From Trichosphaerium sp. ATCC 40318 (Eukaryota; Protista; Tubulinea), in the NCBI GenBank assembly GCA_038496445.1, contig JALMLS010000228.1, positions 434,001-498,000 of the forward strand: DNA of 64,000 bases. Reading direction: 5' to 3'. A program made the translations under genes and the position numbers. The notes under the pieces are model-generated. The model saw only the letters and a program-made list of their open reading frames with translations, did not search any database and was not told where the DNA came from. Within the stretch, counting starts at the first letter, position 1, and the number at the start of each line of letters is the position of its first letter. Below, in pieces: positions 8,739-64,000 of the stretch.

Positions 8739-11251
8739 TCAGGTGAGTACTGTACTGCATGTACAAAGAGAAGAGAACTCACTACAATCCTTACAGCGCT
8801 CAGTGTTACCTGAAATACAATCAACCATTTCCTTTAAAAGACCTTTGTAGTCTGTTACATTAGCTAGTTCCATACAACGTTTCCACTTTTGAGGCAGCAC
8901 TTTCGCCCATGCCCTTCCAAGCTCTTCAGATTGTGTTGTTTTCATCGATATAATGCGAGTAGTATTTGCTTGAAGTAAACCATGATACGCCAAATCTATT
9001 TTTAACTTGTTGCTATTAGGTAGATGGAAGTATGCCATCACTAAAACAAACGAGTATAAATCGTCCTTTGGTGTGTAGGTATGAGTTGGAAGGTCGCACT
9101 TGCACCATTCTTTGTATAGTTGTGGAGCAAACTTCATACCACCGCTTATCACTATGGGCTCTATGTTTGTTGTAGCAGCTCCCCAATCAATTAACATATA
9201 TCGTGGTTCGTCTTCTTCTGAAGCTTCTGGTAACAGCATAATATTAGAAGCAGAAATGTCTCTTTTAAATGAAGCGTTAACAGATGGCCAATATTATGTA
9301 AACAATGTACCTGTGAACGACACCTTTATTGTGAACAAGCTCAAGAGTCGAGATTATTTGTTTTGCGAGTAATACAAAATCAAATGTGACATCTTTACGG
9401 CTTTGACAAATACAATCCATTCCAAATCCAACTCCCGGAACTACTCCAGCCTTTATAAAAAAATAGAGCAATCAGAAGTAGCTTTAAACGTTAGAACGTA
9501 CAACTGTTGGAACACCAGGAATGCCTTTGAGAAGTTCCAGTATCCGTGTTTCACGATCCAACTTGGGCTGTACTCGATCAGTCATATCCCCAATGTACTC
9601 TTTGAATGCTATAAACTTTGGAGGCTCATTATTTGGCGAATAAATCATGTACACTGTGCCATAAGCACCCAATCCAAGTACTTTTCGTGGTACACATGAG
9701 AATCCGTTGATTTTAAACACTTTTGAATTGTATCCAAGATCCCCAAGTTTGTAGTTTAATAAACTTACCAATTGCTTTAATCCATCACCAGGAGCACTTG
9801 ATTCAATCAAGTATTGTTCATGAGTTGCATAATACACTGTTTCAAGCTTACCCCTGAGAGTCATTTTGAAGAATCGTATTTTCTTGTAGTTCTGAAGAAT
9901 ACCATACACAAAGGTACGTCGAGGTTGGGCTTTTAGAAGGGTTTTCATGTTACTCCATATCATTCCTATGTCGTGTGTGGTGAATTGAGCTAATTAACTA
10001 TAAGCTATGGTTAAATTGAGTCGAGTCAGTACCATTCCCTTCCAATATCTCCCAAGCTAAAACATGATGACACAATGTATAATCTCGTTCACCACAAAAG
10101 GGTATAGCTCTTTCTGTTATTCGAAAACATGGTGGATTGAACGATTTGGCATCTGGAACGACATTTGCACGAATATTTGGACAAACATCACGGCGTGATA
10201 TAAATGATGCAAACTGGGTACGAAATTCATCAAGAGGAGATGATTTGAGCTTTAATATCGTTGTTTGAAACTTTTGACAAGCTTCTTTGTGTTCTTTAGA
10301 GTTTTCAGGAAAACAAAATGAGTGTCGTATCTCTATGCGTTCATCCAATGCATTTGCAATAGCAGGATACCCTTGCAAATATTGAGTCAAAACAAAAATA
10401 AAAAGTTGTAATACCCCGTATCGTTTTCTGACTCAAAGATACATCTCTGAATGAGTGCATTAGTCGCAGGTACAAGTGCGTGTTCTTGTTTTCCATCGCC
10501 CTATGACGTTTGTATTCAGCGTTGATATCTTCTTCCTGCCGACGTTGTCTTTTTAAATGAAGATCAATTTTACGTTGGTTTGAAGCATCTATCTTTGTGT
10601 TTTCAGCAATTTGCGCTGTGTTTTGGGCAATTTGCGCTTCGTTTTTTGCAATTTCAGCAGCCATTTCTTTTCGAACCTGGTCCTTCATTTGTGCTTTGAG
10701 GGTAGAAGATACAATAGAATTAAAGTACGCAAGTAGAGATTCAAGGTCACGTCTACTACTTGGGGGTTGGGATATGATAATGCTACCTTCAGCTACTGTG
10801 TTAACAGCAGATAAATGCGGCCTATCTAATTGTGGAGCTAGAACAAGCGTTATTAAATAGGGTCAATGTAAGATGGAGGATAATTAAGGATGGACGTGCC
10901 TGTGGTTTTGGTACAAGCGTCAAATACCAAATCGATAAGTGCTGGCTTATGCGGAATATCAGTAACATTGACATTACACTCAATTGCCATTGCTTTGAGC
11001 TCGTTGCTAGAGAATTTGTTCAATTGCTTCTTGGTCAAAGCAACACCCGTTGTGTCCTGCTTGGCTGTCAGGATACCTTACAATTATCATAAACTAACCT
11101 TGTTTTTGATGTGCGCAGCGACAATCATGCCAACAAGTGCTGTCTTACGCAAACCCTTTGTAACAGCTATTTTACACCGAGACGCCCAGGTCGTTAGCTC
11201 TTTGATGGTGAACTTGTGGAATTGTTTCTTGTTTAATAGAGCTGTAGTCAT
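8739..11251 (-). CDS. Kinase family copy A (2x Rho_N/HeH-like, coiled coil, REase-like, FunK1-like kinase, Cys-rich tail); appears intact
   Basis: 7 in-phase exons; GLGAYG, IAFK, VHRDISASN, IDWG, TPKDDLYS; tail CKDC-x6-CTC. Confidence 0.85.
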
Positions 11252-11679
11252 TTGCGCTACGCTGTGGTCAAAACGAATATCGAAAGGAGCACTAAAATTG
11301 TGCCTGGTAGCGCTTTTACTGCCAGTAGTGATGGTATGAATCACCTTTACGGTACTTCGCAGAGTTGGCAACTTACAGCAACACCAATGCAAAAGCAACG
11401 TATTTTTGGCGTCTCAAAGGTTGAACCGGAATAAAAGACGCACAGGGAACGTTTTTGCGCCAACAGTACTATCTTGAGGTTATCTTCACTGGTTAAGCGA
11501 TAAAACGCTGCGTTTTCTCTGTTATGCGTACTTTCGTTGTTGCTTTTCTTCATAATGAAGACGAGTTCTGAACTTGCTATAAAAGGAATTGAAACAACAT
11601 ACAGCCACTATCAAATACCTCTCGGAGTACAACAATCTTATCCAGAGAAAAGAAAGAATTCACATGTGTTCTTCTCTTG

Positions 11680-12108
11680 ATTAAACTTGTAAGCTATAAA
11701 TTACAAACTCGGCTATCTTGGATACACTTCATACTGATTTCACAAAAAACCGTCTAGTAGTCGGACCACCAACAGCACTATTACAACACCTTCATTGGTA
11801 GTGTTTACATTATCACTAAACTATATCTGCTCTCTTCAAACATTTATGCGCTTAAAAACGCATTTTCAACTAACGCGAATAGGAAATACGATCGTTTCTT
11901 GTACAAACGTGTTCTTACGTAGTAAAACAAGGCATTTGTCAACTCATGGAGTATAGCAAAAGTATTTTGAAAATGCGTGGCAAATATCCAGTTCTCCTTT
12001 CGAAATGTCCTACGTGTCATGTGTCAAAATGAGTGTCAGAAAAAAATAAGAATTACATACTTGCGAATATTCATTCACAGCTACATAAAGTACTTGGATT
12101 GGGTGCTC
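11680..12108 (+). pseudogene. Scattered remnants of a kinase-family copy
   Basis: NYKLGYLGYTS-coding piece near 11698-11731 and an exact KVLGLGA-coding 22-mer at 12087-12108. Confidence 0.5.
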
Positions 12109-12323
12109 GACTTTCAGAGGTTGCCGGCTCATGTCGTTGGCGAACAAAAACCGAATAAACTATCACGCCTTAATGATTTTGGTGGGAAAAAATAAGTGAA
12201 AGCTTGAAATAGTACGACATATTGTTAAAACAGTCATAAGGACAGAAAGTAGTAGCTATATACAGCTAAAAGTCAGCAAAAAGCTAATTCTCATCAGTTT
12301 CTAACTCATTTTGACACATGACA
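12015..12323. repeat. Perfect 20-bp inverted repeat pair, MITE-like
   Basis: TGTCATGTGTCAAAATGAGT (12015-12034) / ACTCATTTTGACACATGACA (12304-12323); outer TGGCAAAT / ATTTGCCA at 11978 and 12331; no TSD seen. Confidence 0.6.
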
Positions 12324-12528
12324 AATGTGAATTTGCCATTTAAATACCTGCCTTTACGTGCGTATGAGATCCCAGTTCAACTATTTGTACGTATTTCATA
12401 AGTGTTGTGAGCGAGAGGCTATAGCGTTATGTTGGTACTCAAAAACTGTCACAGATTGAGTAAAGTACCAACGGCACAAACGGTCCTTTATTATTTCTTT
12501 GTTTTCCTTTTTTTGTTAATATTTGTTA

Positions 12529-13784
12529 CTATAACTCGCTTAGTGGCGCCCAAACAAATTTAATATCTCCTTCTTCAACATACAAATAAACCACATGATC
12601 TGATATCCCATACTCTTCAATGTCATTTATCAATTGTGCTACTATCTGACTTTTAAACTCTACTTCGATTCCTCTGTAGTTAGATTTTCTATTTTGTCCG
12701 TTCTCAGTTACATCGAATATAACATCAGCAATCTCTTTCATATCACAATAAGTATTTTCAACAGTAAACCTTGCTTTCCTTACAACGTAATTCTGTCTAA
12801 GTAGATGTTCGAACATATACTCAACCATATGATGTGTACCATCTCTGGTTTTTTTAAAAAAAGGTACAATATAATCTATAAGTTCATGTTGTTTGGGATC
12901 AATCCATATGCTATTTGCTTTTTTCACAACCATAGAAGTAATTTCATCAGTAGTTTTATCATGTGTTATATTAGCTTTCATAAAGTCTGATATGAATATA
13001 TACGTAGCCTCGCTCAGTATAATAGTCTCTCCGTTGTCTTTTATTAGTTCAGTATGATCTAGGAAGTCTTGAAAGATTGTCATAGTTCGGTGGTGAAGAA
13101 GCTATCGAAGAAAAGACGTCAATACAATAAAGAAAGGGAAGGTTCTTTTGGCTTCAGTTTAACGATTTGAACCATTCTTTTAGTAAAGGGCTGGCGTAGT
13201 ATTTATTTTCAAGGTATGTAGAAGGTAGTACCTCAGCATCATCAAGTACAATGAGAGACGCGGGACACTTCTTTAGTTGAGACATTATTTGTTCCTTTAT
13301 GGCCGCCATAGTCTTATCTATGGTTTCATCCTTATGGGGTCCCTTAAAATCGTGTCCTTTAAGTAGTAGAAATCCGTCAACGAGTGAGTACGGCGCGAAT
13401 AAACCTTTTGCAATTGAAACAGCCGCCAACGTCTTTCCAACACCGCTGTCGCCTACAAAATGCATAGATAGAGGTCGTCGTTTGGTTTTAGTTTTAAACG
13501 CATTTACTATCATCTGAATAGCCTTTGGTTGCCCAAAAACATTGTTTTGGAGACTCTCCTTGATTGCATCAATGTCTAGAGCGTAATTAGCATATTTCGA
13601 TGTTTTAGGGTGCCAGTACCATTTCTTGCGCATGGATCATAGCCCATAAGCTTATAAAATGTCTTCAAATAGCTACCGGAGCCTTTGTGATTGTTACAGG
13701 TCAATACAGTCATACAGATAAACGAGTACCTAGTACGCTCGTTGCACATAACGCTACCACCAATGTTGTGAGAAATGCTTTCAT
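12529..13784 (-). CDS. Torsin-like AAA+ ATPase copy 2, apparently complete (4 exons, signal peptide)
   Basis: MKAFLTTLVVALCATSVLG; VFGQ; Walker A GDSGVGKT; Walker B IVLDDAE; YIFISD; LIDYIVPF; C-terminal small domain with NYRG. Confidence 0.85.
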
Positions 13785-14269
13785 TTAGAGTAATTTTGTG
13801 ATACAAGGCATATTTCCATTTTTAAGTCAAAATGAATCTTTTGCAACTGTAACGAACCGCTTTAGATCTCAAACCGTGAATGTTATGTTCTGTGCTTACA
13901 TGCCTAAATAGGAGATATTCTCACCATACTTAAAAAAGAAATCAGCCAACGACATAAATCATACTGTCCAACGGTCCGGCTGCAGTACTGTTGGAGATCT
14001 CCACAATAGCAAGTTTCTTCGGCCTTCTTAAGACACAAACTGTAGTAGCACCACGGCTTTGGCCAAATGTGGAAACCAAGTCAAAATTAGTAGCTGTAAC
14101 TTTGAAAGCAATACAGAAAACATACAAGGTACTTAATATTAGTAATTACTAATAAATAAATATACCCTCATTATGAGATACAAATGCTTGTGCGCACATA
14201 AATAGCACGAAATGCTTCGAATTGGTGCCATCATTGGTACTCATTCAGTTCAGGACTTTACACAGCTCG

Positions 14270-15177
14270 ATGAAGACTATTTTAGTGGCTTTTTGCATAT
14301 TTGCAGCTATCTCAGGCCTTAACATTTGTGGGTATGACTTTGGTGCGTTAATAAAGTACAACGAAATACAATATCGCAACAATTCACGCTAAAAGTGTTA
14401 GCAATGCGCTAAGAACCTTTTTAAAGCTCTAACTGTTGGTATTGTAGACAAGCTTAGAAATGTTGCAGCCGCTTGGAAAGGTTCCGGTGTGGATTTGAGT
14501 TTCGACCCTTGTGCCGTACAAACTAGGGTAGTAAATACCCTTGCAAACTTAATAAGGTACGCAAAAGAAGCAAATCAGTCTAGAAATTCAAAGCGCTTTA
14601 GAAATCAAATACCTGGTTTTCTAGATAATGCATCTGTTTTTGTGACCATGGGCTCATCAACCGGCCAAGGGGTTCACGGATCAGGAGTACTGTCTGTTGC
14701 TGTGAGTAATAAGCAAGCGGGATGCTATTTTACACCCGCTGTAGGTATGTCGTGAAGGCTTTTCTTCATTCCTGCTAACTGGTTGTTTCGGTATCGGATT
14801 ATCCTACGGAGCAGAAGCGCATTTTGGTGTTGGTGTTATGTGTAAACCCAGAGATTTAGACGGTAAGCAAGCTTTACGAAGATACTATGTCTAACTATTC
14901 ACGAGGAATGTTCTTTTCTGCAACCTATGAGTCAGAGTCGTCTATTGGTATTGGTGGTCGGTATTTTGTGTATCCGACCTCAGGCGTGGAGATATATTTC
15001 TGTTCAGGTTATGGTTTCACAGCAATCGCAGACATTGGATACACGTTCGCATGGCGTAAATTTAATGTGCTTACCAATAGTACAATATCCAACACACTTG
15101 TCAATAAGTGGAAAGAAGTTATGGCCAAGGAAGCGCAGAAAGAGCTTCGGAATAGGAATCAGAGTAAAAAAAAGTAG
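14270..15177 (+). CDS. Hypothetical secreted protein, multi-exon, Gly/aromatic-rich beta-type C-terminal half
   Basis: Signal peptide MKTILVAFCIFAAISG; ORFs 14489-14755 and 14887-15177 joined by short introns. Confidence 0.55.
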
Positions 15178-16016
15178 CTGGCACAATAATACGAAATAAA
15201 CTGGTTTCCATTGAACCCGGTTCAGTTTGCTGTTAGACCTTTTTATAATAACTTGTTGTAATTAACATTACCTAACAAACTTGGCAAAGCAAAATAATCG
15301 CTATTAATGCACTCATTCAGAGATGTATACTTGAGCCAGATTACCTAAGATCCCGCACATTCTTATTGGCGTTAAAACTTACTGTTAAATGAGATTGTGT
15401 AGTGTGAAAGCATAAAGTTATGCTGTAAGCGAAAAAATATTTGTGAATTGTTGACAAAAAACTTGCTTTAAAAGTAACGTAGCAACATACGGAGCCTGCA
15501 TTCTATGATGCCTCGCATACAGTATAACAGACTAAGTTAGGTGGGAACAGAACTAAAGATGTAAACAGTGTAGTTGGTTGAAAAAGCTCTTATAAATCGA
15601 GCAACAATACTCTATGTCCTTTTCTACGCGTAGAGGGAGTGTGAGTACGCACAAAACGCCTTTTAAAACAAACAGGCTATAAAAAGGTAAAACGCCCTCA
15701 AACATATTCTACTACGCATATTTAAACCCCATTATTCCTGATACAGCTATTCGTTGGCCCTAGCCTTCAATATGGTTTTACATAAAATGTTCCTCCGTAT
15801 ATTCATCCATAAAATCAATCTGATTAATTTTAGTTCAGTTGAATAGTTCAGGCACAAAATGATGATCAGCTATTAAATAACTGGCATCTAAACAAAGAAA
15901 ACACAATATGTGCGAAGATGACTAGTAAACAGTTGGAAAATAGAGCTATTTTTACGAAATGTACATTTATTTTTGTGTCTTTAGTCTTCTGGAAAGTTCT
16001 TCCATGTTTTATACCT

Positions 16017-18428
16017 TTATGAGGCGTTTCTGGAAGTATAGAAATCGGGATCAATAAGCGGTTTGTTGCTCTTAACAATGACATTACCTGAAATACAATG
16101 AAGTATTTCGTCTGACACACCTTCATAATCCATGAGATCTGCTTTTTTGAGACACCGCTTCCAGTGTCGAGGGAGAACTGTTCTCCAAGTTGTTTTAAAA
16201 GCTCTAGCAAAGAGGCTTTTAAATGTTGTTTTCGAGATGTATTCTTTAATAAACTTAGCGTAAGCTATGTCTATTTTGTCTTTATCACTGTTTGATAAAT
16301 AAAAGTATGCCATCACATAAATAAAAGAATACAAGTCATCCTTCGGTGTGTAGGCATGTGTTGGAGTGTCATGGAGCCAGTCTTCATACATATGAGGTGA
16401 AAACTTGGCTCCTCCACTTATTTTTATTGGTGCTGTGTTTGTTGTAGCAGATCCCCAATCAATCAACATGTATCTTGGTTCCTTTGTGAACGGCTGAGGT
16501 TGAAGCATTATATTTGAAGCAGAAATATCTCTAAAATATATTTTAGTTGACAACAAATGAGTACGTTGTTACCTGTGAACCACACCTTTACTGTGAACAA
16601 TCTTGAGAGTCGAGAGTATTTGTTTTGTGAGTACTACAAAGTCGAATGGAGCATCTTTACGTTCTTGGCAAATACAATCCATCGCAAACCCAACTCCTGG
16701 AGCTACTCCCACCTTTGGTAGAAAATCAGAACAATCAAAATGTGCGTAAGCCTTAAATACACGCACGACTTTTGGAACACCAGGAATGCCTTTCAGGATA
16801 CCCAGTGTTCGTGTTTCACGATCCAATTTGGGCTGTACTGGATCATCCACATCATATATGTAATCTTTGAAAGCGACATACTTTGGAGGATCATTGTTGG
16901 CCAAGTACATCATGTACACTGTGCCATGAGCACCCAATCCAAGTACTTTTCGAGGTACATATTCGAATCCGTTGATTTTAAACACTTTTGAATTGTATCC
17001 AAGATCCCCAAGTTTGTAGTTTAATAAACTTACCAATTGCTTTAATCCTTCACCAGGTTCACGGAACTCAAATAAATTCATTTCAGGTGTTGCATAATAC
17101 TCAACTGTTGCACTGAGAGTGCCTCCGACCATCTTGAAGAATCGAATTTTCTCGTAGTTCTGAAGCATACCGTACACTGTTGTACGTAGGGGTTGGGCTT
17201 TTAGGAGTGTTTTCATGTCGCTCCATATCATACCTTCATCGTGTGCAGTGAATGGTACTAATTGAATAATAAACAAAGATAGCACGAATAAAATCAAAAA
17301 GAGGAATATAAATCTCAGTACCGTTGCCTTCCAATATCTCCCAAGCCAAAACATGATGATACAATGTACAATCACATTCACGAATAGTTTTGAGTTGTGG
17401 TGTTACTCGAAAACGTGATGGATTGAAAGATTTGGCATCTGGAACAACATCTGCACGAATATTTGGACAAACACCATCACGTGATAAAAATGATGCAAAC
17501 TGTTCTCTGTATTTGTCAAGAGGAGATGACTTGAGCTTTAACATCGCTGTTTGAAACTTTTGACAAGCTTCAATGTACTGTTTGGAGTTTTCAGGATAAC
17601 AAAACGAATGTCGAGATATTGTATCTTCAGCAATGGCATTTGCAATGGCAGGATACCCTTAGAACAATTTTGTTAGCAGTTTTAACATGCAATAAGATAA
17701 ATACCTCGGATTGTTTTCTGACTCAAGGATGTATCTCTGAATGAGTATAATAATTGCAAGTACAACCCGTCGTTCTTGTTTTCCATTGCTCTATGACGTT
17801 TATGTTCAGCTTTGTTGTCTTCTGCATCTTCACGCTGTCTCTTGTCTAGGTTCGCTATGGCTTCTTGGTTGGCTGCTATCTCTTTTGCGTATTCTTCCCT
17901 TACTTCCGTGACAACTGCTTTTTTCAATTGTTCTGTTGTGATAGACTTAAGCAGTAGAACGAATTCGCTGTCAGTTTCGCTGGGTTTCAGTATAGATAGG
18001 GATAGGTCTTGGTTGGAAGCTTGAGCTGTTGAGTCTACAAAAGTTAATGTTTCGAAATAAGATGTAGTGCATGCGATTGACGTGCCTGTGTTGTTACAAG
18101 CGTTAAATACTAAATTCACAAGGGCCGGCTTTCGCAAACCATTTGTGACTTTGATATCACATTGCTTTGCCATGGACGCGAGCTCGTTGATAGTGAATCT
18201 TTTCAATTGTTTCGAAGTCAATACAGTACCATTGGCATCCTACAGCAATTAGAGCGATAAATACGTAAAACACACCTTCAATTGTCTAAAGGCGTCAAAG
18301 ATCGAATCTACTAGCGCTGCTTTACGCAAACCCTGCGTTACAGTGACATCACGCTGAGTTGCCATGGCTGTAAGCTCTTTGACAGTGAATTTATGAAATT
18401 GCTTCTTGGTTAACAAGGCTGTAGTCAT
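16017..18428 (-). CDS. Kinase family copy B; appears intact
   Basis: Same exon pattern as copy A; GLGAHG, VAFK, HRDISASN, IDWG, TPKDDLYS. Confidence 0.85.
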
Positions 18429-18783
18429 TGTGCTGCGCAAAAGTCAGTGCAACGAAATAATATCGAAGTAGTTAAAACTTGATACAAATCGATTAATTGT
18501 ATCTTACATACGCTGGTACTTTGTATTTTGTTGTATAACCTTCAAACTGTTTTGTTTGTAAACGTGTACGTACGCGAGGTTTCTCAAAGTCCCGCAGTGA
18601 AGTGGCGATGTCGTTGGTTAAAAAGTAAGAGAAAAAATGCGTAAGTGCTAAGAAATAGCAAGAAACTAATTCACACAGTTACAACTATAAACGTTTAAAT
18701 CATACCGCGCTGTAGTTGAATGGGCGTTGGCGTGCTCCGTTTAATTTAGAGTTTTCTGAAAAAAACCTGAAGTTGTCTGAAAG

Positions 18784-18896
18784 TAATACTACGGTGTTTT
18801 CTTTGTACCAATGCGTTAAACATTAATGTGGTGAAGTCAATTTGAACGTAATAATGTTTAAACGCATTGCGCACAAGAAAAACCGTAGCAGTATTA
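18784..18896. repeat. Imperfect inverted repeat (~45-bp arms) in the divergent intergenic region between copies B and C
   Basis: TAATACTACGGTGTTTTCTTTGTACCAATGCGTTAAACATTA pairs with TAATGTTTAAACGCATTGCGCACAAGAAAAACCGTAGCAGTATTA. Confidence 0.65.
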
Positions 18897-19185
18897 TTTA
18901 CAATAAAATGCATAGACCTGTTTGCTGCCTTTTTAAGTAAGGTCAGGCGAGGTTCTTTTACCTAATTTGGCTGCCGAGTCAAGGCCGAAAATTGAACTGT
19001 ACACCAATCTTATCACAGTCTTACATACAAACCTAACTACTTGTGTTTTTGGCGTCCAAAAACGCAAAATTTGCCAGAACTAATACACAAACTACTCTGG
19101 CATCTCGGACTGCACCTTTACAACACAACATCAGTACGTGAGTTATTTAAAGTTCAAAGTAACCACGTTAATGCTCATCTTAGCA

Positions 19186-21498
19186 ATGGAGATTCCGAAC
19201 TTACTGATAGGCCTAGTTCTAAACGAGCTATCTGTTGATGTGCTTAAACATATAGCAGCCCAGTTTCACATTGAAGTTGAGGCTAATAACTACAAAGAAG
19301 CAGTTTCAAAAGCTTTAGGAGGTACATTTTGTTCTCCGCGCTGCATTCATAAGTTTTACTTCTCCTTAGACAACCGTACCGATTTTAAGGAATTGTATTT
19401 TGCCGTACATGTAGCTGTAGTGTCTGCAAGAAGTGCTAGATCAGCCCACCATACCAACCAAGAACAGCGAAGAGAATATATTTCTAGAGGAGGAACAAGT
19501 CCGTCCCTGAAAACTAGCTCTAGCGCAGAGCGAAGTGTAAATACAAGGTTGGCAGGTCAAAAGCGAAGTGCTACTTCGCCAAATCAGCCACACAAGAGAT
19601 TCAAAGCAACAAACATAGGCACCGAAAAAGGCAGAGTGTTCCAAGAGTTGCAAATTCTCCTAGGGCGCGTTTCAATAGCGGATAAAGTAAGAAACGAAGG
19701 TACCAGGCGACTTTGAAAGAGCTAAACGGGAAAAAAAGGCTATTTGTCTAAACAAGTTTTATTTTCTTCAAGCTTCAAATCATGCTAATACAATTCCAGC
19801 GATGCACAAAATCATAGGGGACAAGCCTAGTAAAGGCACATTGTTTCCAGCGAACATTTATAAAAAAGAAGATATCTCTGCCTTTCAAACGAAGGTTCAT
19901 GAAGTTCAAGGCTGTATGAACGAACAGAAGCAACTATCAACCAATGTTACTGCCACCCTGCGCGTTCTAGTCGATAAATGTGCTAGTACTCCTATACGAG
20001 TCATTCCTGCTGCTACAAAAACCGTCAACGCTAACGTAGCTACATTATACCATCAAGTTTTATCTTGGAAGATATTAACATCTGATGGCACCTACAATAT
20101 TTTCTAACTGTTTGCTTATTTGAATCTACCTAGAACCGTTCACTCCAGCCGAAGAAGGTGAGGTCTGGAAAGAAATGCACGAAATTTTAAACGAGCAGCC
20201 TGAACGAACGTTGGTATTTGGGGTACTTCAGAACAAGTCGAAAATCAAGATGTATAAGATGGAAATTAAGCATCACCTTAAATACCCACAGTATTCTTAC
20301 AGTGAAAGTTCAGTAATGGAATTATACTCGACAACCTCGAAGAATACGTATTCACCGACCCCAAAATCGAACACAAATACGCAATTCAAGGGCTACATGA
20401 ACGGGTTCGTACTCGTACAAAGAGTGTTTCAGCGAATGACAGCGTCTGAGAACAATTCCGTCGACCTTCCCAACGCTCCTGCAGTTGGGATTGAACAGCT
20501 ACACTTTTTGATGAGTCTAGAACTCAAAGACCTTGGCTATTTCCCAAAAGTGTGTACAGTTTCACAAAATAGGTATACTCCTACAGCGGTATTGGGCGTA
20601 AGCTCTATGACTACTGTGTATAAGATTAAGCTGTTGCCTGGTGGTATGTACGACGCTATGGATGTCGCGTTTAAAGATTACACCAAAAGCAGAAATATAC
20701 AGTTATTAGCTCATGAACTGGATATACTCGGAAACCTAGTGACCACTCCCGGAGTTCCAACAGTTGTATGTTCTTCTAAGTTATTTCTAGCTTTCACTCT
20801 AATTGCTTTTTTGTAGTACTACTCTGAACCAATAGGCTTTGCTATGGAGTGGCTTTCACCAAATACGCTTGACTGTGCGAAGATAGCAGAAGATATACTC
20901 ATTACTCTGAAAGAAGTACATTCGAAGAATATAGTTCATGGGTAAGTTTTTTTAGCAACAAGAAATTATGTTGTGCGTTACCCAAAGTAGCCTTCGGAAA
21001 TAATTTATCAAAAAGTTTGCGAATGATTCAATACATTTTTTGTAGAACAGAAATATTTCTAACTTTTGTTGTAGAAATATAACTGTGGATAATATAATGG
21101 TGAACAAAAACGGCCGTTATATGCTTATCGGTTGGTCAGGTGCCATACAGGCAGGAGAGCGACAGTACATTCGTGAAGGCATAAAGTTTACACCTCATTT
21201 ACACCAAGCAGTATTGTCTATTAACTCAAGTCATGTGTACACACGCATCGAGGACTTGTACTCTCTTGTTAATGTAATTGGATACATCTGCTTACCACAA
21301 GAAGCAAAGGAAGCCATTGATGTAGCCTACAATATGTGGGTCTACACGGATAATGAGCTACATATTCGCGAACTAACGGACTTGTGGTCTCGCTATCTTC
21401 CGTTTTGGCTCAATTGCTACGATGCAGCACGTCTGTTGGATTATGAGCTGGTAAAAACAGAAATTCTTAAGGTGCTCCCTAACAATGTTGTACAATAA
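19186..21498 (+). CDS. Divergent pseudokinase paralog (copy C); start uncertain
   Basis: Same domain order (HeH-like NELSVDVLKHIA, LYHQVLSWKIL, QPERTLVFGVLQN); Gly loop is VLGVSSMT, HRD is HGN, DWG is GWS; exons appear open. Confidence 0.8.
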
Positions 21499-22094
21499 AC
21501 CGTTTCGAACAGTAACGTTACCTACAATGTAATTATTGAAAAAACTAGTGGTGTTTGTATTTCATTGTGTTGGTACCTTGTGCCATGATTTTGCTAGTTT
21601 TTATGTAATTGGCAGCGTCAAGCAGTACTAACAATGTTCCAAACGAATATTTGGTCAGAAAACTATTTACAAAATCGGATAGATTAGGCAATCAGAAAAA
21701 GCCAACTTTATACTAGATAAATACTAAAAACTGGCTAATCTGTTAACACTTGGCAAGGCTGGCAATCTGAATGCATCACATTCCACAACAAGAGAACGCA
21801 CCTTGCCGCGCTTATGTACCTTAAGCCAAGTAAAGAATACAATGTCAAAGTCATACTATACGGTTATTATTGTACGTTATACAGCTTTGACTGTTCATTA
21901 ATGAATGATTTCAGTTCTGTCAGACCACCGTATGCCAAAACCCTGCACTGCAGTGTTAACTGCCAAGAACCTACATTTGAAATTATAAACCCACTGATAA
22001 ATGTGATACAAGGGTGTCTCCGGAAGGTATTTTCCAAGGCTTGGAAGAAAAAAAACCAATTGTTGATTTTGGTTTTTTATTTAGCATCGTTCCA

Positions 22095-22495
22095 TTAAAG
22101 CTGAAGTCATCTCCTCTTGAAAAATACAGAGAACAGTTTGCATTATTTTTATCACGTGATGATATTACAAACAGATGTCGTTCCAGATAGTAAATCGTTC
22201 AATGCTGATTTCTTTCAAATAACACCACAGCTCAAAACGAGATTATACATTGTTTTATTGGCTTGGGAGATATTGGAGGGCAACATGTCTTGCTAGCAAG
22301 AATACCATACATGAATGTACAAACTCGACGATCTCGGATACACTTCATTCAAAAATGTTTAAAATCAACGGTTACTCATGTACCTCAAAAAGTACTTGGA
22401 TTGGGTGCTCATGGCACAGTGTACATGATGTACTTGGACAACAATGATCCTCCAAAGTATGTCGTCAAAGAGTACATTGGAAGTGTGAACGATCA
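22095..22495 (+). pseudogene. Internally deleted, frameshifted kinase-family fragment
   Basis: KLKSSPL, LAWEILEG and KVLGLGAHGTVY pieces in different frames with deletions between them. Confidence 0.8.
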
Positions 22496-22779
22496 AATAA
22501 ACTTTAGATCAAATAGCGACATAAACACAAAATACAGTTTATACTGGATTAGAACTACGAGGTTAACATACTTCAAACAAATATTTCTTTTATTTATTGA
22601 CTTGATGCTAGCACCTATTGTAACACAATCAACAACCAACACTACATGTACACTGATAGTAATGAGATATAGATGACTTGAGCTCTTTAGTGTACATTTT
22701 CTTTAATTGCTGATTGTATGTAGTAACAAGAAGCATGAGCGTCCATACCATCACAACATCTAATTACAATCCAACCGGC

Positions 22780-22950: not shown

Positions 22951-23607
22951 CCGGCAATTCCAACACTATGTACACGTCAACGTTGTTATGTTCAAATAAG
23001 AGTAACTACCGATTTACTAAAAAAATGGAAGCGAGATGCTGCAATGTTTGGTGTTGAGCAGTGATCTACGTCAGCACTTGACTTTTACCTAATAAGGAAA
23101 TGAGGAAGGACGTTCTTACCTTACTTAAAAGGGCATTAAAAAACAGTGCTTTTCAACAGCAATTGGTCAGAGAATAGAACCTTCTCTCATCCTCTACAGT
23201 TTGTAGGTTTGGATGATGTCAACATTTTGTGCCTAATTTGGTGGAACTTTGCAAAAGTCACTCTTTAAGCTTACGCCAACTACATCACATTTTTCGCTCG
23301 AACTCAGCAGTTTTTCTAAAGCCTTACGTAAGACAAAGTCAAACGCAACTTTGAAACCCGAACTTAACAATTGCACTAACACGCCAGCGTATTCGCAATA
23401 AACAGTCTGTACTGTACTTCCAAAACAGTTTCTATCCAACTCGTTGTAGATCTTTCAAGTGGCATACAATACGTACCAAACTTACTAGTACTAAACACAC
23501 GAAGGTAATAGCATATTTCGACTACAAACCAAGAAAATGTTAGCGAACGTAAAAAAGTGAACAACAACGCTTATTAACTTTCTATTTTGTTGCTGACTTT
23601 GAATAGC

Positions 23608-25931
23608 ATGACAACAGCTTTATTAAACAAGAAACAATTTCACAAGTTCACAATCAAAGAGCTTGCGGCTATCGCAACTAGGCATGACGTCAAAGTTACA
23701 AATGGATTGCAGAAGGCAGCACTTGTAGATCTAGTATTTGACGCGTGCAAGTACAAGGCGAGACAAATTTTGGTCGTTTGTTGAAGCCGCTAATTGAATT
23801 AGGCTATGACTACAGTACTTACTGCAAAGCAATTGCTCAAGTTCACCATCAACGAGCTTAAAGTATTGGCAACGCACTACAATATTAATATTACAAACGG
23901 TTTACGCAAGACAACAATTGTAAATTTGATATTTGATGCTTGTAGTAAAAAACCAGGTATGTAATCATCCTTACAATATTCAATCTTACATTGCTCTACA
24001 GCTCAAGCCTCTAAAAACCAAGTGCAAACTTCTGATACAACTGAATCCATCGATGATACCACTTTGTGCTTTATTAAGTTGGTTAAGAGTCTCACACCAG
24101 ATTCATTGGAGAAATTAACTCAATTTCGCGACGACTTGGAAAAGCTGAACAAAAGACAGCGTCAAGATGAAGAAGAAAACTTAGCCGAATACAAACGTCA
24201 CAGAGCAATGGAAAACAAGAACAACCGATTGTACTTGCGATTATTGTACTCATTCAGAGATACATCCTTGAGCCAGAAAACACTCCGAGGTATATCATCG
24301 TATTATAAGTTGCAAGTACTAACATAATTATCGTAAGGGTATCCTGCCATTGCAAATGCTATTGCTGAAAATACTATTTCTCAGCAGTCGTTCTGTTATC
24401 TTGATGAGTCTAAACAGTACATAGAAGCTTGTCAAAAGTTTCAAACAGCGATATTAAAGCTGCAGTCATCTCCTCTTGACAAATACAGAGAACAGTTCGC
24501 ATCATTTTTATCACGTGATGATATTTGTCCGAATATTCGTGCAGATGTTGTTCCAGATGCCAAATCGTTCAATCCATCGCGTTTTCGAATAACACCTCAA
24601 CTCAAAACAATACGGGAACGAGACTGTACATTGTATCATCACATTTTGGCTTGGGAGATATTGGAAGGCAACGGTGTGAAAGTTTTACTTTTTTGTCAAT
24701 TCCTTTGCTATTCTTGATTCACTTATGTTTTAATTAAGCTCCATTCACCACACACGATGAAGGTATGATATGGAGTGATATTAATACCATCATGAAGGCC
24801 CAACCTCGGCGTACATTCGTGTATGGTATTCTTCAGAACTATGAGAAAATTCGATTCTTCAAAATGGTTAGAGGAGGCACTTTCACTGCAAAATTTAAGT
24901 ATTACACAACGCCTGATCTGGATTTGATTGATCCACGTACTCCAGGTGAAGGATTAAAACAACTGGTAAGTTTGTTAAATTACAAACTTGACGACCTTGG
25001 ATACATTTCAAAAGTGTTTAAAATCAACGGATTCGAATATGTGCCCCGAAAAGTACTTGGATTGGGTGCTCATGGCACAGTGTACATGGTATACATGGCC
25101 AATAATGATCCTCCAAAGTATGTCGCATTCAAAGAGTACATTGGAAGTGTGAACGATCCAGTACAGCCCAAATTGGATCATGAAACGCGAATACTGGAAA
25201 TTCTTCAATACGTTCCTTGTGTTCCAAAAGTTGTACGCTGGCTATTTTAAGCCTAAAGCCGCTTAGCTGTTCTAATTTTCTACCAAGGTTGGGATAGTTC
25301 CAGGCATAGGGTTTGCAATGGATTGTATTTGCCAAGAACGTAAGGATGCACCATTTGACTACGTATTGCTGGCAAAACAAATAATTGATACTCTTGATTA
25401 TATTCACGGAAAAGGTGTCGTTCACAGGCAAACAACTTATTCTTTTGCTGCTCTACCTCTTACTTATATTTTAGAGATATTTCTGCTTCGAATATCATGC
25501 TTCAACCTCAATATTCCGAAAATCAACCACAATATATGTTGATTGATTGGGGATCTGCTACAACAAACACAGCACCAATGAAGATAAGTGGAGGAGCCAA
25601 GTTTTCACCTCACATGTATGAAGAGTGGCTCCTCGACACTCCAACACATGCCTACACACCGAAGGATGACTTGTATTCTTTTATTTATGTGATGGCATAC
25701 TGGCATTTGTCAAACCAAAACAAGGACAAAATAGACGTAGCTTATGCTAAGTTTGTTCAAGCCCTCATCACCAAAACATACAAAGAAGGATTTGCAAAAA
25801 AATTCAAAGAGACATGGACAACAGTTCTCCCTCGATACTGGAAACGGTGTATTGAAAAAGCAGATCTCATGGATTACCTAGGTGTCTTGGATGAAATACT
25901 CTTTTGTATTGCAGGCACCAGTAAAACCTAG
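23608..25931 (+). CDS. Kinase family copy D; appears intact (needs two GC-AG introns)
   Basis: 7 in-phase exons; HRDISASN, IDWG, TPKDDLYS. Confidence 0.85.
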
Positions 25932-26951
25932 TCGTGTTATTAAAGTGAACTATTTGGCTAAGACGGCATTTTTGTATCTACAACCTGAATCTGACTTTTC
26001 TAAATAAATCTGTACACGAAAGCATGTTTTAAGACAAACTGACTTAAAGCAAAAAAAAAAAAACCTGTTTCTGCCTGCTGAGATCTGCTTCTGACAGATC
26101 TTGCAAATGTCATTTTTTTTAATGTGATCTACCCTCAATATTCCTGTCCAGTGAATCGTTACAGAACTGCTAGTAAATTTTTGGTACACTTGTATTGGTT
26201 GAGTTCCGAGACACTTTCAAACAATTTTTCAAAAAAATCTGCGGGAGGAAGTCAAGTTTAAAGTTGTACAGCACCTCCCCAACCGATAAGCATATAACGA
26301 CCACTCTTTTCTACCGTAATATTATCGTCAGTAATATTTCTACAACAAAGTTAGTAAATAATTCTCAAATACAAAAAAAACTGCCCGTGTACTGCTGTAG
26401 GAGTGTAGTACTGCCCAGCTATTTTACACTCTTTGGTACAATATCCAAGTAGTAAGATTCGCATGTTCAAGAGGCAATGTAGCTGGATTAGCCCCAAGCC
26501 AGGAGCAGGGACAGGTACTACCATACTATAAACTGTTTTCATCTTGTTGAAAATTGCGCCAATTCACAAAGTCGAACGCTTTTTAAAAACAACACTTAAA
26601 ACCACGTGTATTATTCTACTTTACTTGACCGTTAAAAAAGAGCTACTTGCCTGTTCTACGTTCTAGCAAAGTTCAAGTACGGTTTTTTGCCTGCTAAGTA
26701 CTTAAATGCCTGTTAGGGTAGATACATTACTGCAAAGGCCTCAATCTGTACGAACTAAAAGATTGTCTCACATAATTAGTGAAACTGCGTTTTAGCTTAT
26801 TACTTTACAGCTTTTTTTTATTTTGTATAGTCCCAACGTTCTCACAAAACAGGCGCCAAAGAACCTATTTTCCTCATTTTAGACCAAAACATCGCTGACG
26901 TGCCTGTACATAAAGTGATCATTACCAACAAGAGGTTGTACAATACGAACA

Positions 26952-29323
26952 ATGACTACAGCTTTATTAAACAAGAAGCAACTCCAGAAGTTTACCATCA
27001 AAGAGCTCACAACCATGGCAACTCAATGTAACGTCACTGTTACGAATGGTTTACGTAAGACAGCGCTTGTAGATTTAGTCTTTGACGCCTGTAGCAAGGT
27101 GCGTTTGGGTTGTTCTTTTGTCGTTCAATCTAATAGAAGTAGGAAACTGACAGTACAGCTTTGACTTTGAAACAATTACAGAAGTTTACCATCAAAGAGC
27201 TCACAACCATGGCAACTCAATGTAACATCACTGTTACGAATGGTTTACGTAAGACGGCAATTGTGGATTTGATCTTTGAAGCTTGCGGAAACAAACAAAA
27301 AGGCATGTAACATCCCGATAGTTACAATCTTACCTGTACAGATGCCACAACTGCCCAAACGCAAAAAAACATGAGCGAAAGTGAGTTGTTTGAACACATG
27401 ACGGCGCTTTTTGTAGCTCAACAGAGAGAAAAAGCTACCAAGATAGTGAGGGAAGAATACGCAGAAGAGATGGCAGCCAACCAAGAAGCTATAGCGAACC
27501 TAAAAAAAAGACAGCGTGAATATGAAGAAGAAAATGAAGCTGAACATAAACGTCACAGAGCAATTGAAAACAAGAACAACCGATTGCACTTGCGATTATT
27601 GTACTCATTCAGAGATACATCCTTGAGCCAGAAAACACTCCGAGGTAACACATCGTATTACAAGTTGCAAGTACTAACATAATTGTCGTAAGGGTATCCC
27701 GCCATTGCAAATGCCATTGCTGAAGATACAATATCTCGACAGTCGTTCTGTTATCCTGAAAAATCTAACCAGTACAATGAAGCTTGTCAAAAGTTTCAAA
27801 CAGCAATATTAAAGCTGAAGTCATCTCCTCTTGATGAATTTCGTTCAGAGTTTGCATCATTTTTATCACGTGATGATATTTGTCCAAACATTTGCGCAGA
27901 TGTTGTTCCAGATGCCAAATCGTTCAATCCACCATGTTTTAGAATAACACCACAACTCAAAACTATTCGTGAACGTGATTGTACATTGTATCATCATGCT
28001 TTGGCTTGGGAGATATTGGAAGGCAACGGTACTGAGATTTATATTCCTCTTTTTGATTTTATTTGTGTTATCTTTGTTTATTATTCAATTAGTACCATTC
28101 ACTGCACACGATGAAGGTATGATATGGAGCGATATGAATACACTCCTAAAAGCACAACCTCGACGTACAACAGTGTATGGTATTCTTCAGAACTACGAGA
28201 AAATTCGATTCTTCAAAATGGTTAGAGGTGGCACTTTCACTGCAACATTTGAGTATTATGCAACGTCTGAAATGAACTTGATTGATTCAGGTACTCCTGG
28301 CAATGGATTAAAAGAACTGGTTAGTTTATTAAACTACAAACTCGGTGATCTTGGATACAATTCAAAAGTGTTTAAAATCAACGGATTCTCATGTGTACCA
28401 CGAAAAGTACTTGGATTGGGTGCTCATGGCACAGTGTACATGATGTACTTGGCCAACAATGATCCTCCAAAGTATGTTGCATTCAAGGAGTACATAGATG
28501 ATGTGGACGATCCTATAAAGCCCAAGTTGGATCGTGAAACACGAATACTGGAACTTCTGAAAGACATTCCTGGTGTTCCAAAAGTTGTCGTTCTTTTTTT
28601 TAAGTCTTGTTTTGATCGTTCTGATTTTATACCAAAGGTTGGGATTGCTCCTGGCGTCGGATTTGCCATGGATTGTATTTGCCAAGAACGTAAAGACACT
28701 CCATTCGATTTTGTAGTACTCACAAAACAAATAATCTCAACTCTTGAGCTTGTTCACAGTAAAGGTGTCGTGCACAGGTAAACAAAACTTGCTCTTTTGT
28801 TATGACAACAAACTCTTGATTTATTTATATTTTAGAGATATTTCTGCTTCGAATATCATGCTTCAACCTCAGCCGTTCGAAAAAGTACCACGATACATGT
28901 TGATTGATTGGGGATCTGCTACAACAAACACAGCACCAATGAAGATAAGTGGAGGAGCCAAGTTTTCACCTCATATGTTTGAAGAGTGGCTCCACGACAC
29001 TCCAACACATGCCTACACACCAAAGGACGACTTGTATTCTTTTATTTATGTGATGGCATACTTACACTTACCAAACAAAAATAAGGACAAAGTAGATATG
29101 GATTACGCTAAGTTTGTTGAAGCGTTTTAAAAAACAAGCCACAATGGGCTGAAATATTTAGAAACACTTGGACAGAAGTTCTACCTCGACAGTGGAACGG
29201 TGTATGGAAAAAGCAGATCTCATGGATTACAAAGGTGTCTTGGATGAAATACTCCATTGCATTTCAGGCACTCCTACAGTATATGTGTTCCCTAAGTTTG
29301 GGGCAAATAAAAATACAACGTAG
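26952..29323 (+). pseudogene. Kinase family copy E; intact until a premature stop and frameshifts in the last ~60 codons
   Basis: TAA at 29128-29130 and a missing A in TGG-AA-CGG relative to paralogs; could be homopolymer sequencing errors. Confidence 0.65.
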
Positions 29324-29599
29324 AAAAAAAAACAAAACAAGTTCTGACTGAACTCTGCCTCAATATCAATCAAACTTTTATTGTTGACAGTCCTAATCTT
29401 TCTTGACAAGGTTTCCTGCATAAATACCACTTGTAAATGTATGGTCTTAAGATATAAACACTTACTCGCGTGTTGCGTTAGAGCCACAGAGGTATGGATG
29501 CTCGAATTGCTTTGTGCTAGGATGTACGTATTGTACAAAACTCATGTACGGAAAGTTGTAGAAATCCATCAACGAGCGAATACGTATTGACCTTTTGCA

Positions 29600-29890
29600 G
29601 TATACACAGCTGCTAACGTCTTTCCAATACCGCCGTCGCCTACAAAATGCATATAGAGCTGTTGTTGTTTGGTTTTAGTCAGGAACATATTATCATCTGA
29701 ATAGCGTCTGGTTGACCAAAACATTGTTTGTGCTTGTCTCGATTGCGTGTGGCTAGAGCGTAATTAGCATGTTTCGATGTCTTATGCTGCCAGTACCATT
29801 TCGTGCGAATGGATCATGGCCCAGAAGCTTATACATGCCTTTAATAGCTACCAGAGCCTTTTGATGTTGTTAACGTGAGAAACGCTTACA
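29600..29890 (-). pseudogene. Decayed torsin-like copy 3
   Basis: Recognisable DP..RN, FGQPDAIQMI and Walker A GDGGIGKT with many small deletions. Confidence 0.75.
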
Positions 29891-30376
29891 GCAAGTTACT
29901 AAATATGGCGGCATGCCTAAATACGAAATATTCCAACCACACGTTGCCCATAGATCAAACTCTGTACCACCCCAATGAAAGATAAATGTATAGTTGCGTC
30001 TAGCTAATTTCAAGCCTTAGAGTCCGTTGTGACTTACATGCCTAAATAGGAGATATTCTTCCCATACTTAAAATAGAAATTATCCGACTATCTCACTCAT
30101 TAAACTCTGCACCATCTCAGCTTTCGAAGGTGAGTGTTGTAGATATTAACTACACCTCATACGTTTGTTTGTGGGTAAACCCGAACTCGCAGATGGACAA
30201 ACCATAGGATTGAGCCATAGGATTATCCTGGACAGCAATGGTTTCCGAACAAGTGTTGAAATTGCATTCATATTTGCTTTGCAAATATTTGATATGATCA
30301 TGGCGGCAAAGCATATTAGACAACAAGAACAGAGAAAAAAAGCGCAACTGTTTTAAAGTTTATTCATTCTAACTAG

Positions 30377-32824
30377 TTATGGCGCACGTGCTGTACAAAA
30401 TGAAGTGAACGTGTTACAGTCCTTACAGTGTTCGTCGTTACCTGATATACATCGGAGCATTTCAGTTAAAAGACCTTTGTAGTCTGTGGCATCAGCACGT
30501 TCCAGACAACCTCTCCATTTTTGAGGGAGAGTACTTGCCCACATACTTTCGAGTTCTTGTGCAAATCCTTTCCTGTTATGATTTGATCTACCTATTTGTG
30601 CGTAGCATCCATCTATATTACTCTTGCTACCTTTTGGCAAGTGCATGTAAGCCACCACAAAAATGAGGGAGTACAAGTCATCTTTCGGTGTGTAGACATG
30701 TGGTTCATCAGCAGCCCATTCTTTGTATAATTGAGGTGAAAACCTGAAACCTCCACTTATACTTATGGGTGTGGTGTTTGTTGTAGCAGATCCCCAATCA
30801 ATCAACATATATCGTGGTTTGTCTTCAAACGGCTGAGGCTGAAGCATGATATTTGAAATAGAAATGTCTCTGATGGAGAAGTAAATATCAAACAAGAGAG
30901 AATAACACTATATACCTGTGAACAACACCTTTACTGTGAACAAGCTCAAGAGTCGAGATTATTTGTTTTGTAAGCAACACAAAATCAAAGACTACGTTTT
31001 TACGGCTTTGACAAATACAATCCATCGCAAATCCGACTCCTGGAGCAATTGTGACCTTGAATGAATTTAGCAATAAAAAACATAAGTGCAAATATGAACG
31101 TACAACTTTTGGAACACCAGGAATGTCTTTCAGAAGTTCCAGTATCTGTGTTTCATGATCCAATTTGGGCTGTACTTACTGGATCGTTCACACTTCCTAT
31201 GTACTCTTTGAACGCGACATATTTTGGAGGATCATTGCTGGCCAAGTACATCATGTACACTGTGCCATGAGCACCCAATCCAAGTACTTTTCGTGGTACA
31301 CATGAGTATCCGTTGATTTTAAACACTTTTGAAGTGTATCCAAGATCACCAAGATTGTAGTTTAATAAACTAACCAGTTGATGTAGTCCTTCAGCTGAAG
31401 CACCTGATTCTATCAAATTCAGTACAGGCGTTAAATAATAACTAGGTTCTCTGTTATGTAGGACGATTCTGAAGAATCTAATTTTCTTGTAGTTCTGAAG
31501 AATACCATACACCCTTGTACGTTGAGGTTGGGCTTTTAGTATAGCTTTCATATCACTCCACATCATTCCTTCATCATGTGGAGTGAATAAAGCTAATAAA
31601 ATCATTAGCATGTGACCATATAAATGTGAGGTTTTAAAGCGACATACTGTTGCCTTCCAATATCTCCCACGCCACAACATGATGATACAATGTATAGTCT
31701 CGTACACGAATCACAGTTTTGAGTTGAGATGTTATTCGAAAACATGGTGGATTGAACGATTTGGCATCTGGAACGACATCTGCACGAATGTTTGGACAAA
31801 TATCATCACATGATAAAAATGATGCAAACTCTGCTCTATATTTGTCAAGAGGAGATGACTTAAGCTTCAGTACTATTGTTTGAAACTTTTGACAGGCTTC
31901 AATGTGTTGTTTAGACTTATCAGGGAAGCAAAACGAGTATTGATGTATTAAGTCTTGGGCAATAGCATTGGCAATTGCAGGATACCCTTTGACAGGTGTG
32001 AGATAATAAGTCAAGTTTAGCTAGAATACATTAAACCTATACCTTGTATTGTTCTCCTACTCAAGGATAAATCTCTCATAGAATACAGCAATTGCAAAAC
32101 AAAACGTGTATTCGTGTTTTCTTCTGTTTTCCGACGTTTACATTCATCTACGCTTTCCTCTCTATCCCTGAGCCTTTTCCTGTCACCTTCCTCTTCAGTT
32201 TTCTGGTTTTCATTAAGCTTGTTGAACAAAGCGAACAATTCTTCTTTGTATTGTTCCCTTACTGTAGCTTCAATCTTCTGTTTCAATGACTTCTCAAAAT
32301 ACTTAAGTATGGCTTGGGCTTCGGGCGTTTGGTATTCAGGTGGTAGGCATCACTTCCTTGCTTTCTAGGGATTAAAGGTAGGACTGCAGGCTCAGATTCT
32401 AGAATGAAGGTGTTACTGTACAAGAAGGTGAATACAAAACGAGCTTGATCATTTATTGTAAAATGGGAGTACCTTTCTGTTTGTTACAGGAATCAAATAT
32501 CAAATCTATAAGCGCTGTCTTATGAATACCTTGTGTAACAGTGATACCACACCGAGATGCCAAGGATGTAAGTTCTTTGATGGTGAGTTTGTGCAATTGC
32601 TTTTTGGTCAAAGCTGTACTCAGTTCATTCTAGAAAGTCATTGGCAAAACCTTACAACGATGGTAACTTGCCTTATTGTTGACATGAGCAGTACAGATCA
32701 AATCTACAAGTGCTGCCTTACGCAGACCGTTTGTAATACTTATATCGCACTGAGCTGCAATGCCTGCCAGCTCATTAATTGTGAACTTGTGGAATTGCTT
32801 CTTGTTTAATAAATTTGTGGTCAT
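30377..32824 (-). pseudogene. Kinase family copy F, disrupted
   Basis: Full exon set, but a 4-bp duplication (TACTTACT, 31173-31180) frameshifts the N-lobe, and in-frame stops lie near 32350-32402. Confidence 0.8.
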
Positions 32825-63985: not shown

Positions 63986-64000
63986 CTAATAAGGTAGAAT

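Follow-up and report, generated by a model that had tools for sequence, protein, structure and literature searches.

A cluster of restriction endonuclease-kinase-like genes with a predicted tandem helix-extended-helix header in the genome of Trichosphaerium sp. ATCC 40318

A stretch of 64,000 nucleotides from the tubulinean protist Trichosphaerium sp. ATCC 40318 (assembly GCA_038496445.1, contig JALMLS010000228.1, positions 434,001 to 498,000; hereafter the window, in whose own numbering positions are given) contains, between positions 8739 and 32824, a cluster of related genes in which a pair of N-terminal repeats resembling the Rho_N or helix-extended-helix (HeH) motif is followed by a middle domain akin to restriction endonucleases (REases) and by a protein kinase. 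Eleven copies or fragments were counted in the window, eight of them within this interval, by tblastn with exon pieces and by means of six-frame lists of open reading frames. They use both strands and range in state from open exons to fragments, in agreement with an original prediction, made from the sequence, of at least ten copies in both orientations and at all stages of decay; the motifs quoted in that prediction are all present in the window copies. Searches were made with single exons or natural open frames, and exon joins were drawn from open frames and GT-AG sites only.

Five full-length, header-bearing paralogues were found in the window by tblastn and in the open-frame lists. Copy c2 (16017-18428, minus strand; tblastn span 16083-18413) appears intact and served as reference, and all exons are open in c1 (8739-11251, minus strand; span 8760-11254) and in c5 (23608-25931, plus strand; span 23602-25925). 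Copy c7 (26952-29272, plus strand; span 26967-29272) is damaged at its 3' end by a stop that comes too early, at 29128-29130, and by the loss of 1 bp beyond it, and c8 (30377-32824, minus strand; span 30380-32809) carries a 4-bp insertion near 31175 which shifts the frame within the kinase N-lobe. A sixth gene of full length, c3 (19138-21498, plus strand; span 19138-21486), is a divergent paralogue with 29-33% identity. Two remnants complete the cluster: a decayed one at 22080-22499 (plus strand), in which tblastn recovers middle-domain and N-lobe parts with shifted frames, and a small one at 26264-26542 (minus strand) which derives from a c3-like paralogue.

The exon order of a full copy comprises repeat 1; repeat 2 with linker, coiled coil and KRHR block; middle-domain exon 1; middle-domain exon 2 with the kinase N-lobe, divided by one further short intron that is in frame in some copies; and the kinase C-lobe. 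In c2, all on the minus strand, exon 1 (18276-18428) encodes the first HeH/Rho_N-like repeat from the initiator Met, and exon 2 (17685-18239) encodes the second such repeat, the variable linker, the coiled coil, a conserved basic KRQR...KRHR block and an LYLQLLYSFRD segment. Middle-domain exon 1 (17311-17658) corresponds to the N-terminal half of the REase-like domain, from IRADVVPD to VLAWEILEG. The next exon (16572-17240) holds the C-terminal half of that domain (QPxR, VYGxLQN, IRFFK), a linker and the kinase N-lobe, with its Gly loop, VAFK Lys and alpha-C Glu, as far as the HR of HRD (Pkinase, E 1e-4), and the C-lobe exon (16017-16535) contributes the D of HRD, SNIML, DWG and TPKDDLYS.

The genome as a whole comprises 70.3 Mb in 642 contigs, with about 38% GC and short GT-AG introns. 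Beyond the window, five further full copies of the subfamily were found: c9 on contig C16, just past the window, c10 and c11 on C194, and c12 and c13 on C206. Partial copies are also present, as is a header at the end of contig C490. A locus on C567 (L008) gave scores identical to those of a C194 copy (L004/L009) in every search and duplicates c11; it is probably a haplotig or a second assembly of the C194 locus. The subfamily thus amounts to about ten full-length copies, which form three or four clusters. Three of the ten are broken, namely c7, c8 and c10 (the last by an in-frame stop within the first middle-domain exon), and seven appear intact. In c9 (L006:2976-3389, minus strand), about 21 residues of the same exon are duplicated internally and in frame, so that a segment ending in CPNIR is repeated. 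The REase-kinase family in the wider sense gave at least 81 exon-level matches in the genome; DUF6826, the Pfam domain of the relatives described below, was matched at four loci at E<=0.01, two of them above the cut-off.

As regards the header, the two repeats of about 45 residues are encoded by separate exons, and the first begins at the initiator Met in the full header-bearing copies. The original prediction had placed the pair in each full copy, which holds for c1, c2, c5, c7 and c8 and fails for c3. The claimed likeness to Rho_N was upheld by the Pfam model (PF07498, cut-off 24.9 bits), which was exceeded by c2 repeat 2 (26.3 bits), by a repeat on C194 (28.3 bits) and by paralogues on contig C4 (25.1-26.0 bits); c2 repeat 1 (19.4 bits) and the other repeats (19-24.4 bits) fall below it. 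When all six frames of the genome were scanned, the cut-off was passed at six places, with per-genome E values of 1.6e-4 to 1.6e-3. The nearest named ESM Atlas clusters to the header are Rho_N/SAP (0.89). At the level of sequence, the header can therefore reasonably be assigned to HeH, with a fold that is predicted. No stretch resembling a signal peptide can be read from the sequence of the N-terminus.

A profile built from an alignment of 22 repeats (A3) matched 30 places in the genome, 24 of which are subfamily members. Three are single headers which precede REase-kinase paralogues of 31% identity on C4, one (C1) adjoins another REase-kinase match, and two (C46, C14) could not be linked to a REase-kinase gene; every strong match, and most of the 30 overall, adjoins REase-kinase loci. 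The profile matched none of 173 relatives retrieved from other organisms, and Rho_N none of the 58 relatives scanned. Since single headers stand before the C4 paralogues, the header appears to predate the subfamily, and its tandem duplication would have arisen within it.

The kinase of the subfamily is apparently active, to judge from its motifs: none of the ten copies departs from the Gly loop LG(L/I)GAHGTVY, the VAFK Lys, the alpha-C Glu, HRD(I)SxSN or DWG. The proposed likeness to FunK1 is supported for c2 by the Pkinase_fungal model (PF17667, cut-off 24.1 bits), to which the c2 C-lobe exon scored 27.5 bits and that of c8 18.1, with no match for c1, in an exon-wise scan which depresses the scores. 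A different picture is given by c3, which lacks the Rho_N pair and lies head-to-head with c2 at a distance of about 700 bp. Its HRD Asp is replaced by Asn, its DWG by GWS, its Gly loop is degenerate, and its REase motifs are degenerate too (WKIL). The DWG Asp is also missing from two pieces outside the 8739-32824 interval, a pseudokinase-type C-lobe exon at 4856-5296 (minus strand; tblastn span 4871-5281; VGWG, thus GWG) and a C-lobe exon of a divergent paralogue at 63478-63996 (minus strand; span 63520-63996; ISWG, thus SWG), which runs beyond the edge of the window. All three are predicted pseudokinases. A decayed kinase fragment in several frames was additionally detected by tblastn at 62624-63303 (plus strand), likewise outside the interval.

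In the clusters on C16, C206 and C567, apparently active copies are repeatedly found next to pseudokinase-type paralogues with Asn for the HRD Asp and GWS or GWG for DWG (window 16017-21498; L005 802-2012; L010 7044-8556; L008 1847-3032). A cysteine motif, CxxC...CxC, was also observed at the C-terminal end of c1, c8, c10-c13, a C4 paralogue and the 63478 piece (8739-8800, 30377-30440, 63478-63540; L001 1198-1260), whereas c2, c5 and c9 lack it in their last open frame; it may be a zinc knuckle, or may sit on an alternative last exon.

The relatives of these genes were sought with a profile of the second middle-domain exon and the N-lobe (A1), scored against 1.84 billion representative proteins. 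It retrieved 276 proteins at E<=1e-3 and 24 at E<=1e-10, the best at 3e-20, and none at E<=1e-30, so that no close relatives seem to exist outside this genome. From the matches, 58 relatives were picked for carrying the REase motif and aligned (A2). DUF6826 (PF20713) was found in 49 of them, directly before the kinase, with Pkinase in 47 and Pkinase_fungal in 22. In one protein, P0065, DUF6826 (123.7 bits) and Pkinase occur together with a Crinkler N-terminal domain (70.6 bits), and another, P0047, has the Crinkler domain and DUF6826 in a record that stops short of the kinase. The named sources of relatives include the Amoebozoa Difflugia, Arcella and Ceratiomyxa, as well as Diplonema. A word-index protein search with a 270-residue open frame gave no match, a result that reflects the length window and divergence and is no evidence of absence. 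The Crinkler ubiquitin-like (Ubl) domain of LxLFLAK type (PF20147) had no match genome-wide, a weak negative because the positive controls also went without a match. In the literature, no paper was found that mentions DUF6826 and none that pairs FunK1 with a restriction endonuclease.

The summary of Zhang et al. 2016 in PMC5289972 describes REase-kinase as a class of C-termini of the CR (Crinkler/RHS-type) proteins; these C-termini are treated there as toxin modules with swappable headers, and unrelated alpha-helical headers are noted. Because the relatives are mostly DUF6826-kinase proteins, two of them with a Crinkler N-terminal domain, the window genes can be assigned by sequence to the known CR REase-kinase family (DUF6826 plus a FunK1-like kinase), and the kinship with Crinkler-type REase-kinase proteins that had been suggested for them is borne out. 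A conserved, low-copy group of housekeeping kinases was considered and rejected, given the at least 81 exon matches in this genome and a patchy occurrence elsewhere (276 matches among 1.84 billion representatives).

In the homologues, the middle domain has a canonical pattern, which reads KPD ... hhhG(E/D)hK ... GQ ... QPxR ... GFLTD..IQFF, with P, D, K and R each at least 90% conserved among the 58. The homologue P0146, which covers the REase region only, was modelled with a predicted local distance difference test score (pLDDT) of 81 and a predicted template modelling score (pTM) of 0.77, in an alpha-beta-beta-beta-alpha-beta-beta layout. Its best Foldseek matches were DrdV, 9y1l (a putative REase-domain protein), TT1808, D212 and BpuSI. 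A second structure search, independent of Foldseek, returned BpuSI (Z 11.3), DrdV (10.5), TT1808 (9.2), 3ijm (8.9), 9y1l (8.5) and HsdR (8.0), and nearly all of its top 50 were PD-(D/E)xK nucleases. Since the best structural matches are almost all PD-(D/E)xK nucleases, DUF6826 is predicted to be a domain of REase fold, the link being drawn by structure comparison of a model.

In the window subfamily itself, the two halves of the domain behave differently. A local hidden Markov model (HMM) of the homologues' REase region matched the c13 open frame at model positions 72-156 with 66.9 bits, and the C-terminal half is, by sequence, clearly homologous to DUF6826/CR-REase. With Pfam, the middle-domain exons found no match even at E<=10. 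A genome search with a profile of the first middle-domain exon recovered the subfamily alone and one weak c3-like match. Among the paralogues, L001-L003 match both halves of the local HMM with KPD and ExK intact, and those on C4, C124 and C62 retain KPD and ExK. As a stand-in for the subfamily, the natural 316-codon open frame of c13 was modelled; its middle domain (pLDDT 69.9; at least 88 in the C-terminal half) shows three strands, a helix and strands, and the same REase list came at or near the top of the structure search with Z 5.3-7.8 (BpuSI 7.4, DrdV 7.3, TT1808 6.8). The c13 model thus supports a predicted REase fold in the window subfamily, with low confidence in the N-terminal half. 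At this locus (L010:3266-4213, minus strand, C206), the two middle-domain exons are separated by a GT-AG intron of 54 nt that is in frame and free of stops, which makes the locus a single open frame of 316 codons; retention of the intron would add 18 hydrophobic residues.

Where the relatives have (E/D)xK, all ten subfamily copies have W(E/D)IL, Leu replacing Lys. Which residue corresponds to the PD Asp is uncertain: the Asp of RAD, which in the c13 model lies within strand 1, is Asn in two of the ten copies, c1 (RAN) and c10; an NP(P/S/N) motif precedes strand 2; and MAFFT aligns the Asp of VVPD with the KPD of the homologues. As the ExK Lys is absent under every mapping of PD, a canonical nuclease mechanism is unlikely in the subfamily on the strength of its motifs. 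The original prediction of a PD-(D/E)xK domain in which PD has become AD and ExK has become EIL therefore stands as to the fold of the homologue's DUF6826 region (Z up to 11.3) and the loss of the Lys in ten of ten copies, and is left ambiguous as to the change from PD to AD.

Selection was estimated by the Nei-Gojobori method, per exon, on the ten copies. The ratio of nonsynonymous to synonymous substitution rates (dN/dS) was 0.16 in repeat 1, 0.22 in repeat 2, 0.27 in the KRHR block, 0.28 in middle-domain exon 1, 0.11 in the C-terminal half of the REase-like domain, 0.28 in the kinase N-lobe, 0.22 in its catalytic part and 0.35 in the C-terminal tail, with 0.56 in the variable linker (linker range 0.35-0.66). 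The conserved exons are under purifying selection, at about 0.1-0.35. Synonymous divergence (dS) ranges from about 0.3 to 1.3, the copies being not very young, and is uneven: the header exons have about 1.1, the middle-domain and N-lobe exons 0.3-0.5 (window exons 17311-17658, 24337-24684, 27692-28039 and 31637-32020). Nucleotide identity is most uniform in the first middle-domain exon (93-96% among c10-c13; of the six copies on C16, five share 84-91% and c1 78-81%); the headers share 67-94%, mostly 70-84%, those of c10-c13 mostly 73-84% with one pair, c12/c13, at 94%. This unevenness points to gene conversion, to extra constraint, or to both, and gene conversion or recombination is suggested at the linker. 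The family shows birth and death of genes, yet its proteins are conserved and do not evolve fast outside the linker. In the earlier description of the family as rapidly turning over, the turnover of copies is visible, but the conserved exons do not follow it, with dN/dS of 0.1-0.35 at dS 0.3-1.3.

Two neighbouring features deserve mention. A torsin-like AAA+ gene lies upstream of c1 at 12529-13633 (minus strand; Pfam Torsin, 35.9 bits against a cut-off of 27), and a partial second copy of it lies at 7331-8100 (minus strand), upstream of the pseudokinase piece at 4856-5296. As torsin-like copies stand beside both loci, the duplicated unit seemingly spans both genes. Outside the kinase cluster, at 53881-58794 (minus strand), there is an open frame of 1637 residues which resembles a retrotransposon polyprotein.

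The reading that we favour, with somewhat better than even confidence, is that of a lineage-specific, tandemly amplified CR REase-kinase subfamily with an HeH-pair header, acting as an intracellular tethered kinase with an ex-nuclease module. The protein would be an intracellular, probably nuclear and possibly dimeric Ser/Thr kinase; the HeH pair would tether it to nucleic acid or chromatin inside the producing cell, and the former nuclease domain would serve in binding or regulation rather than in cutting. The data show the order of the domains, their homology, the REase fold of a modelled homologue, the states of the motifs, purifying selection and the birth and death of genes; from these we infer where the protein acts, that it binds DNA and dimerises, that its nuclease is inactive and that its kinase is active. 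The best-supported novelty is an architectural variant, in which a tandem HeH header is combined with a coiled coil, a basic block, a predicted nuclease fold lacking its catalytic Lys and an apparently active kinase, the family itself being known.

Several points weigh against this reading. The A3 profile aligns with the helix-extended-helix motif of the Rho N-terminus in the PDB at E 0.14-0.16, below significance, and the basic motif is the single pointer to a nuclear location. The N-terminal half of the middle domain gave no match to DUF6826 or to the homologue profile with Pfam, the local HMM or hhalign (probability 0.1 for the alignment of the first middle-domain exon against that of the homologues), and in the c13 model this half has a pLDDT of 33-71. 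The Z values of that model, at most 7.8, lie in a range which the tool calls common, and the model is not independent support for the fold because its alignment contained homologues. Furthermore, the Asp four residues after RAD (VVPD, or VVQD in c13) is invariant, and some PD-(D/E)xK enzymes take their Lys from elsewhere, so that loss of ExK is no proof of inactivity. Finally, the architecture depends on exon joins derived as stated at the outset.

Three other explanations have been weighed. The proteins could be delivered toxins or effectors in the Crinkler sense, released into prey, competitors or a host, with the HeH pair as a new header aimed at the nucleus or nucleic acids of the recipient. 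The homology to Crinkler-headed REase-kinase proteins speaks for this, as do the multi-copy clusters, the pseudogenes and the variable linker, together with the view of CR C-termini as toxin modules with swappable headers in the summary given by PMC5289972. We consider it quite unlikely, however, since no signal peptide is seen in the sequence, the presumed toxic nuclease is without its signature and purifying selection acts on all conserved exons, none of which shows signs of positive selection; moreover, the header matches are mostly confined to the genome's own family, with none among 173 relatives elsewhere, and the Crinkler Ubl has no match genome-wide, weak as that negative is. Alternatively, an intracellular surveillance or immune family might be involved, in which the HeH pair, together with the nuclease-like module, serves as a sensor of foreign nucleic acid (that of giant viruses, for instance), the kinase signals, and the adjacent pseudokinases act as partners or decoys. 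Such a role would fit the birth-and-death dynamics in clusters, the recurrent active-kinase/pseudokinase pairs on C16, C206 and C567, the variable linker and a nuclease fold that is conserved yet non-catalytic by motif; the putative sensing parts, however, lack positive selection (dN/dS 0.11-0.28) and no known immune domains are present, and we regard it as unlikely. That the cluster is mostly decaying selfish or neutral DNA, a gene family now functionless and amplified by segmental duplication and gene conversion, is very improbable: frame-breaking lesions do occur in three of the ten full copies, besides several fragments, the strong dS differences between exons suggest gene conversion and the neighbouring torsin-like gene has been co-duplicated, but seven of the ten copies keep exons open over some 750 codons, every conserved exon, at dS 0.3-1.3, has a dN/dS far lower than 1, and the catalytic residues of the kinase are invariant.

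A bolder reading, to which we likewise give a low probability, would be a domesticated toxin module turned nuclear nucleic-acid sensor-kinase, in which the HeH pair and a dead but conserved nuclease fold detect foreign or damaged DNA or RNA (of giant viruses, for example), the active kinase signals and the pseudokinase neighbours modulate. If true, it would constitute a protist receptor family resembling innate immunity and assembled from Crinkler parts. The REase-kinase modules of CR/Crinkler proteins are known mainly from pathogens of plants and animals, in which they are presumed to be toxins. The cluster may be taken as a natural instance of a lost nuclease signature, with the predicted fold and the kinase still under selection and a delivery-type header swapped for a doubled motif of nucleic-acid-binding type, and it offers a testable example of possible intracellular re-use of a toxin module. 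In addition, structure comparison has tied the Pfam family DUF6826 to the restriction endonuclease fold, at the level of models.

Compared with known systems, the header shares with the HeH superfamily (the Rho N-terminal domain, SAP and LEM) a repeat length of about 40 residues, and its pattern resembles that of the Rho N-terminus; it differs in that two repeats stand in tandem at the N-terminal end of a eukaryotic kinase, the rest of Rho being unrelated. From the Crinkler effectors proper, the window proteins are set apart by beginning with an HeH repeat and not with the PF20147 Ubl header. With FunK1 they have in common the DWG-type and DDLxS-type motifs and a c2 C-lobe above the Pfam cut-off, and the homologues match both ends of the FunK1 model, including the N-terminal part that spans the REase-like region; the other copies, however, fall below the cut-off (18.1 bits or none), and nothing places the organism among the fungi, the named relatives being amoebozoan and diplonemid. 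To our knowledge, FunK1 proteins have not been described with HeH headers. The closest system is that of the CR REase-kinase proteins, from which the window subfamily departs in carrying a tandem HeH/Rho_N-like pair in place of the Crinkler Ubl, in lacking the ExK Lys, with a catalytic half beyond profile recognition, and in showing no sign of export. What it shares with them is a REase-fold domain, here predicted, immediately before a divergent kinase and in the same order; a homologous second half of the REase (QPxR, hGFLxx, IxFF) followed by linker and kinase; and modular headers on multi-copy, clustered genes, two of the homologues being Crinkler-headed.

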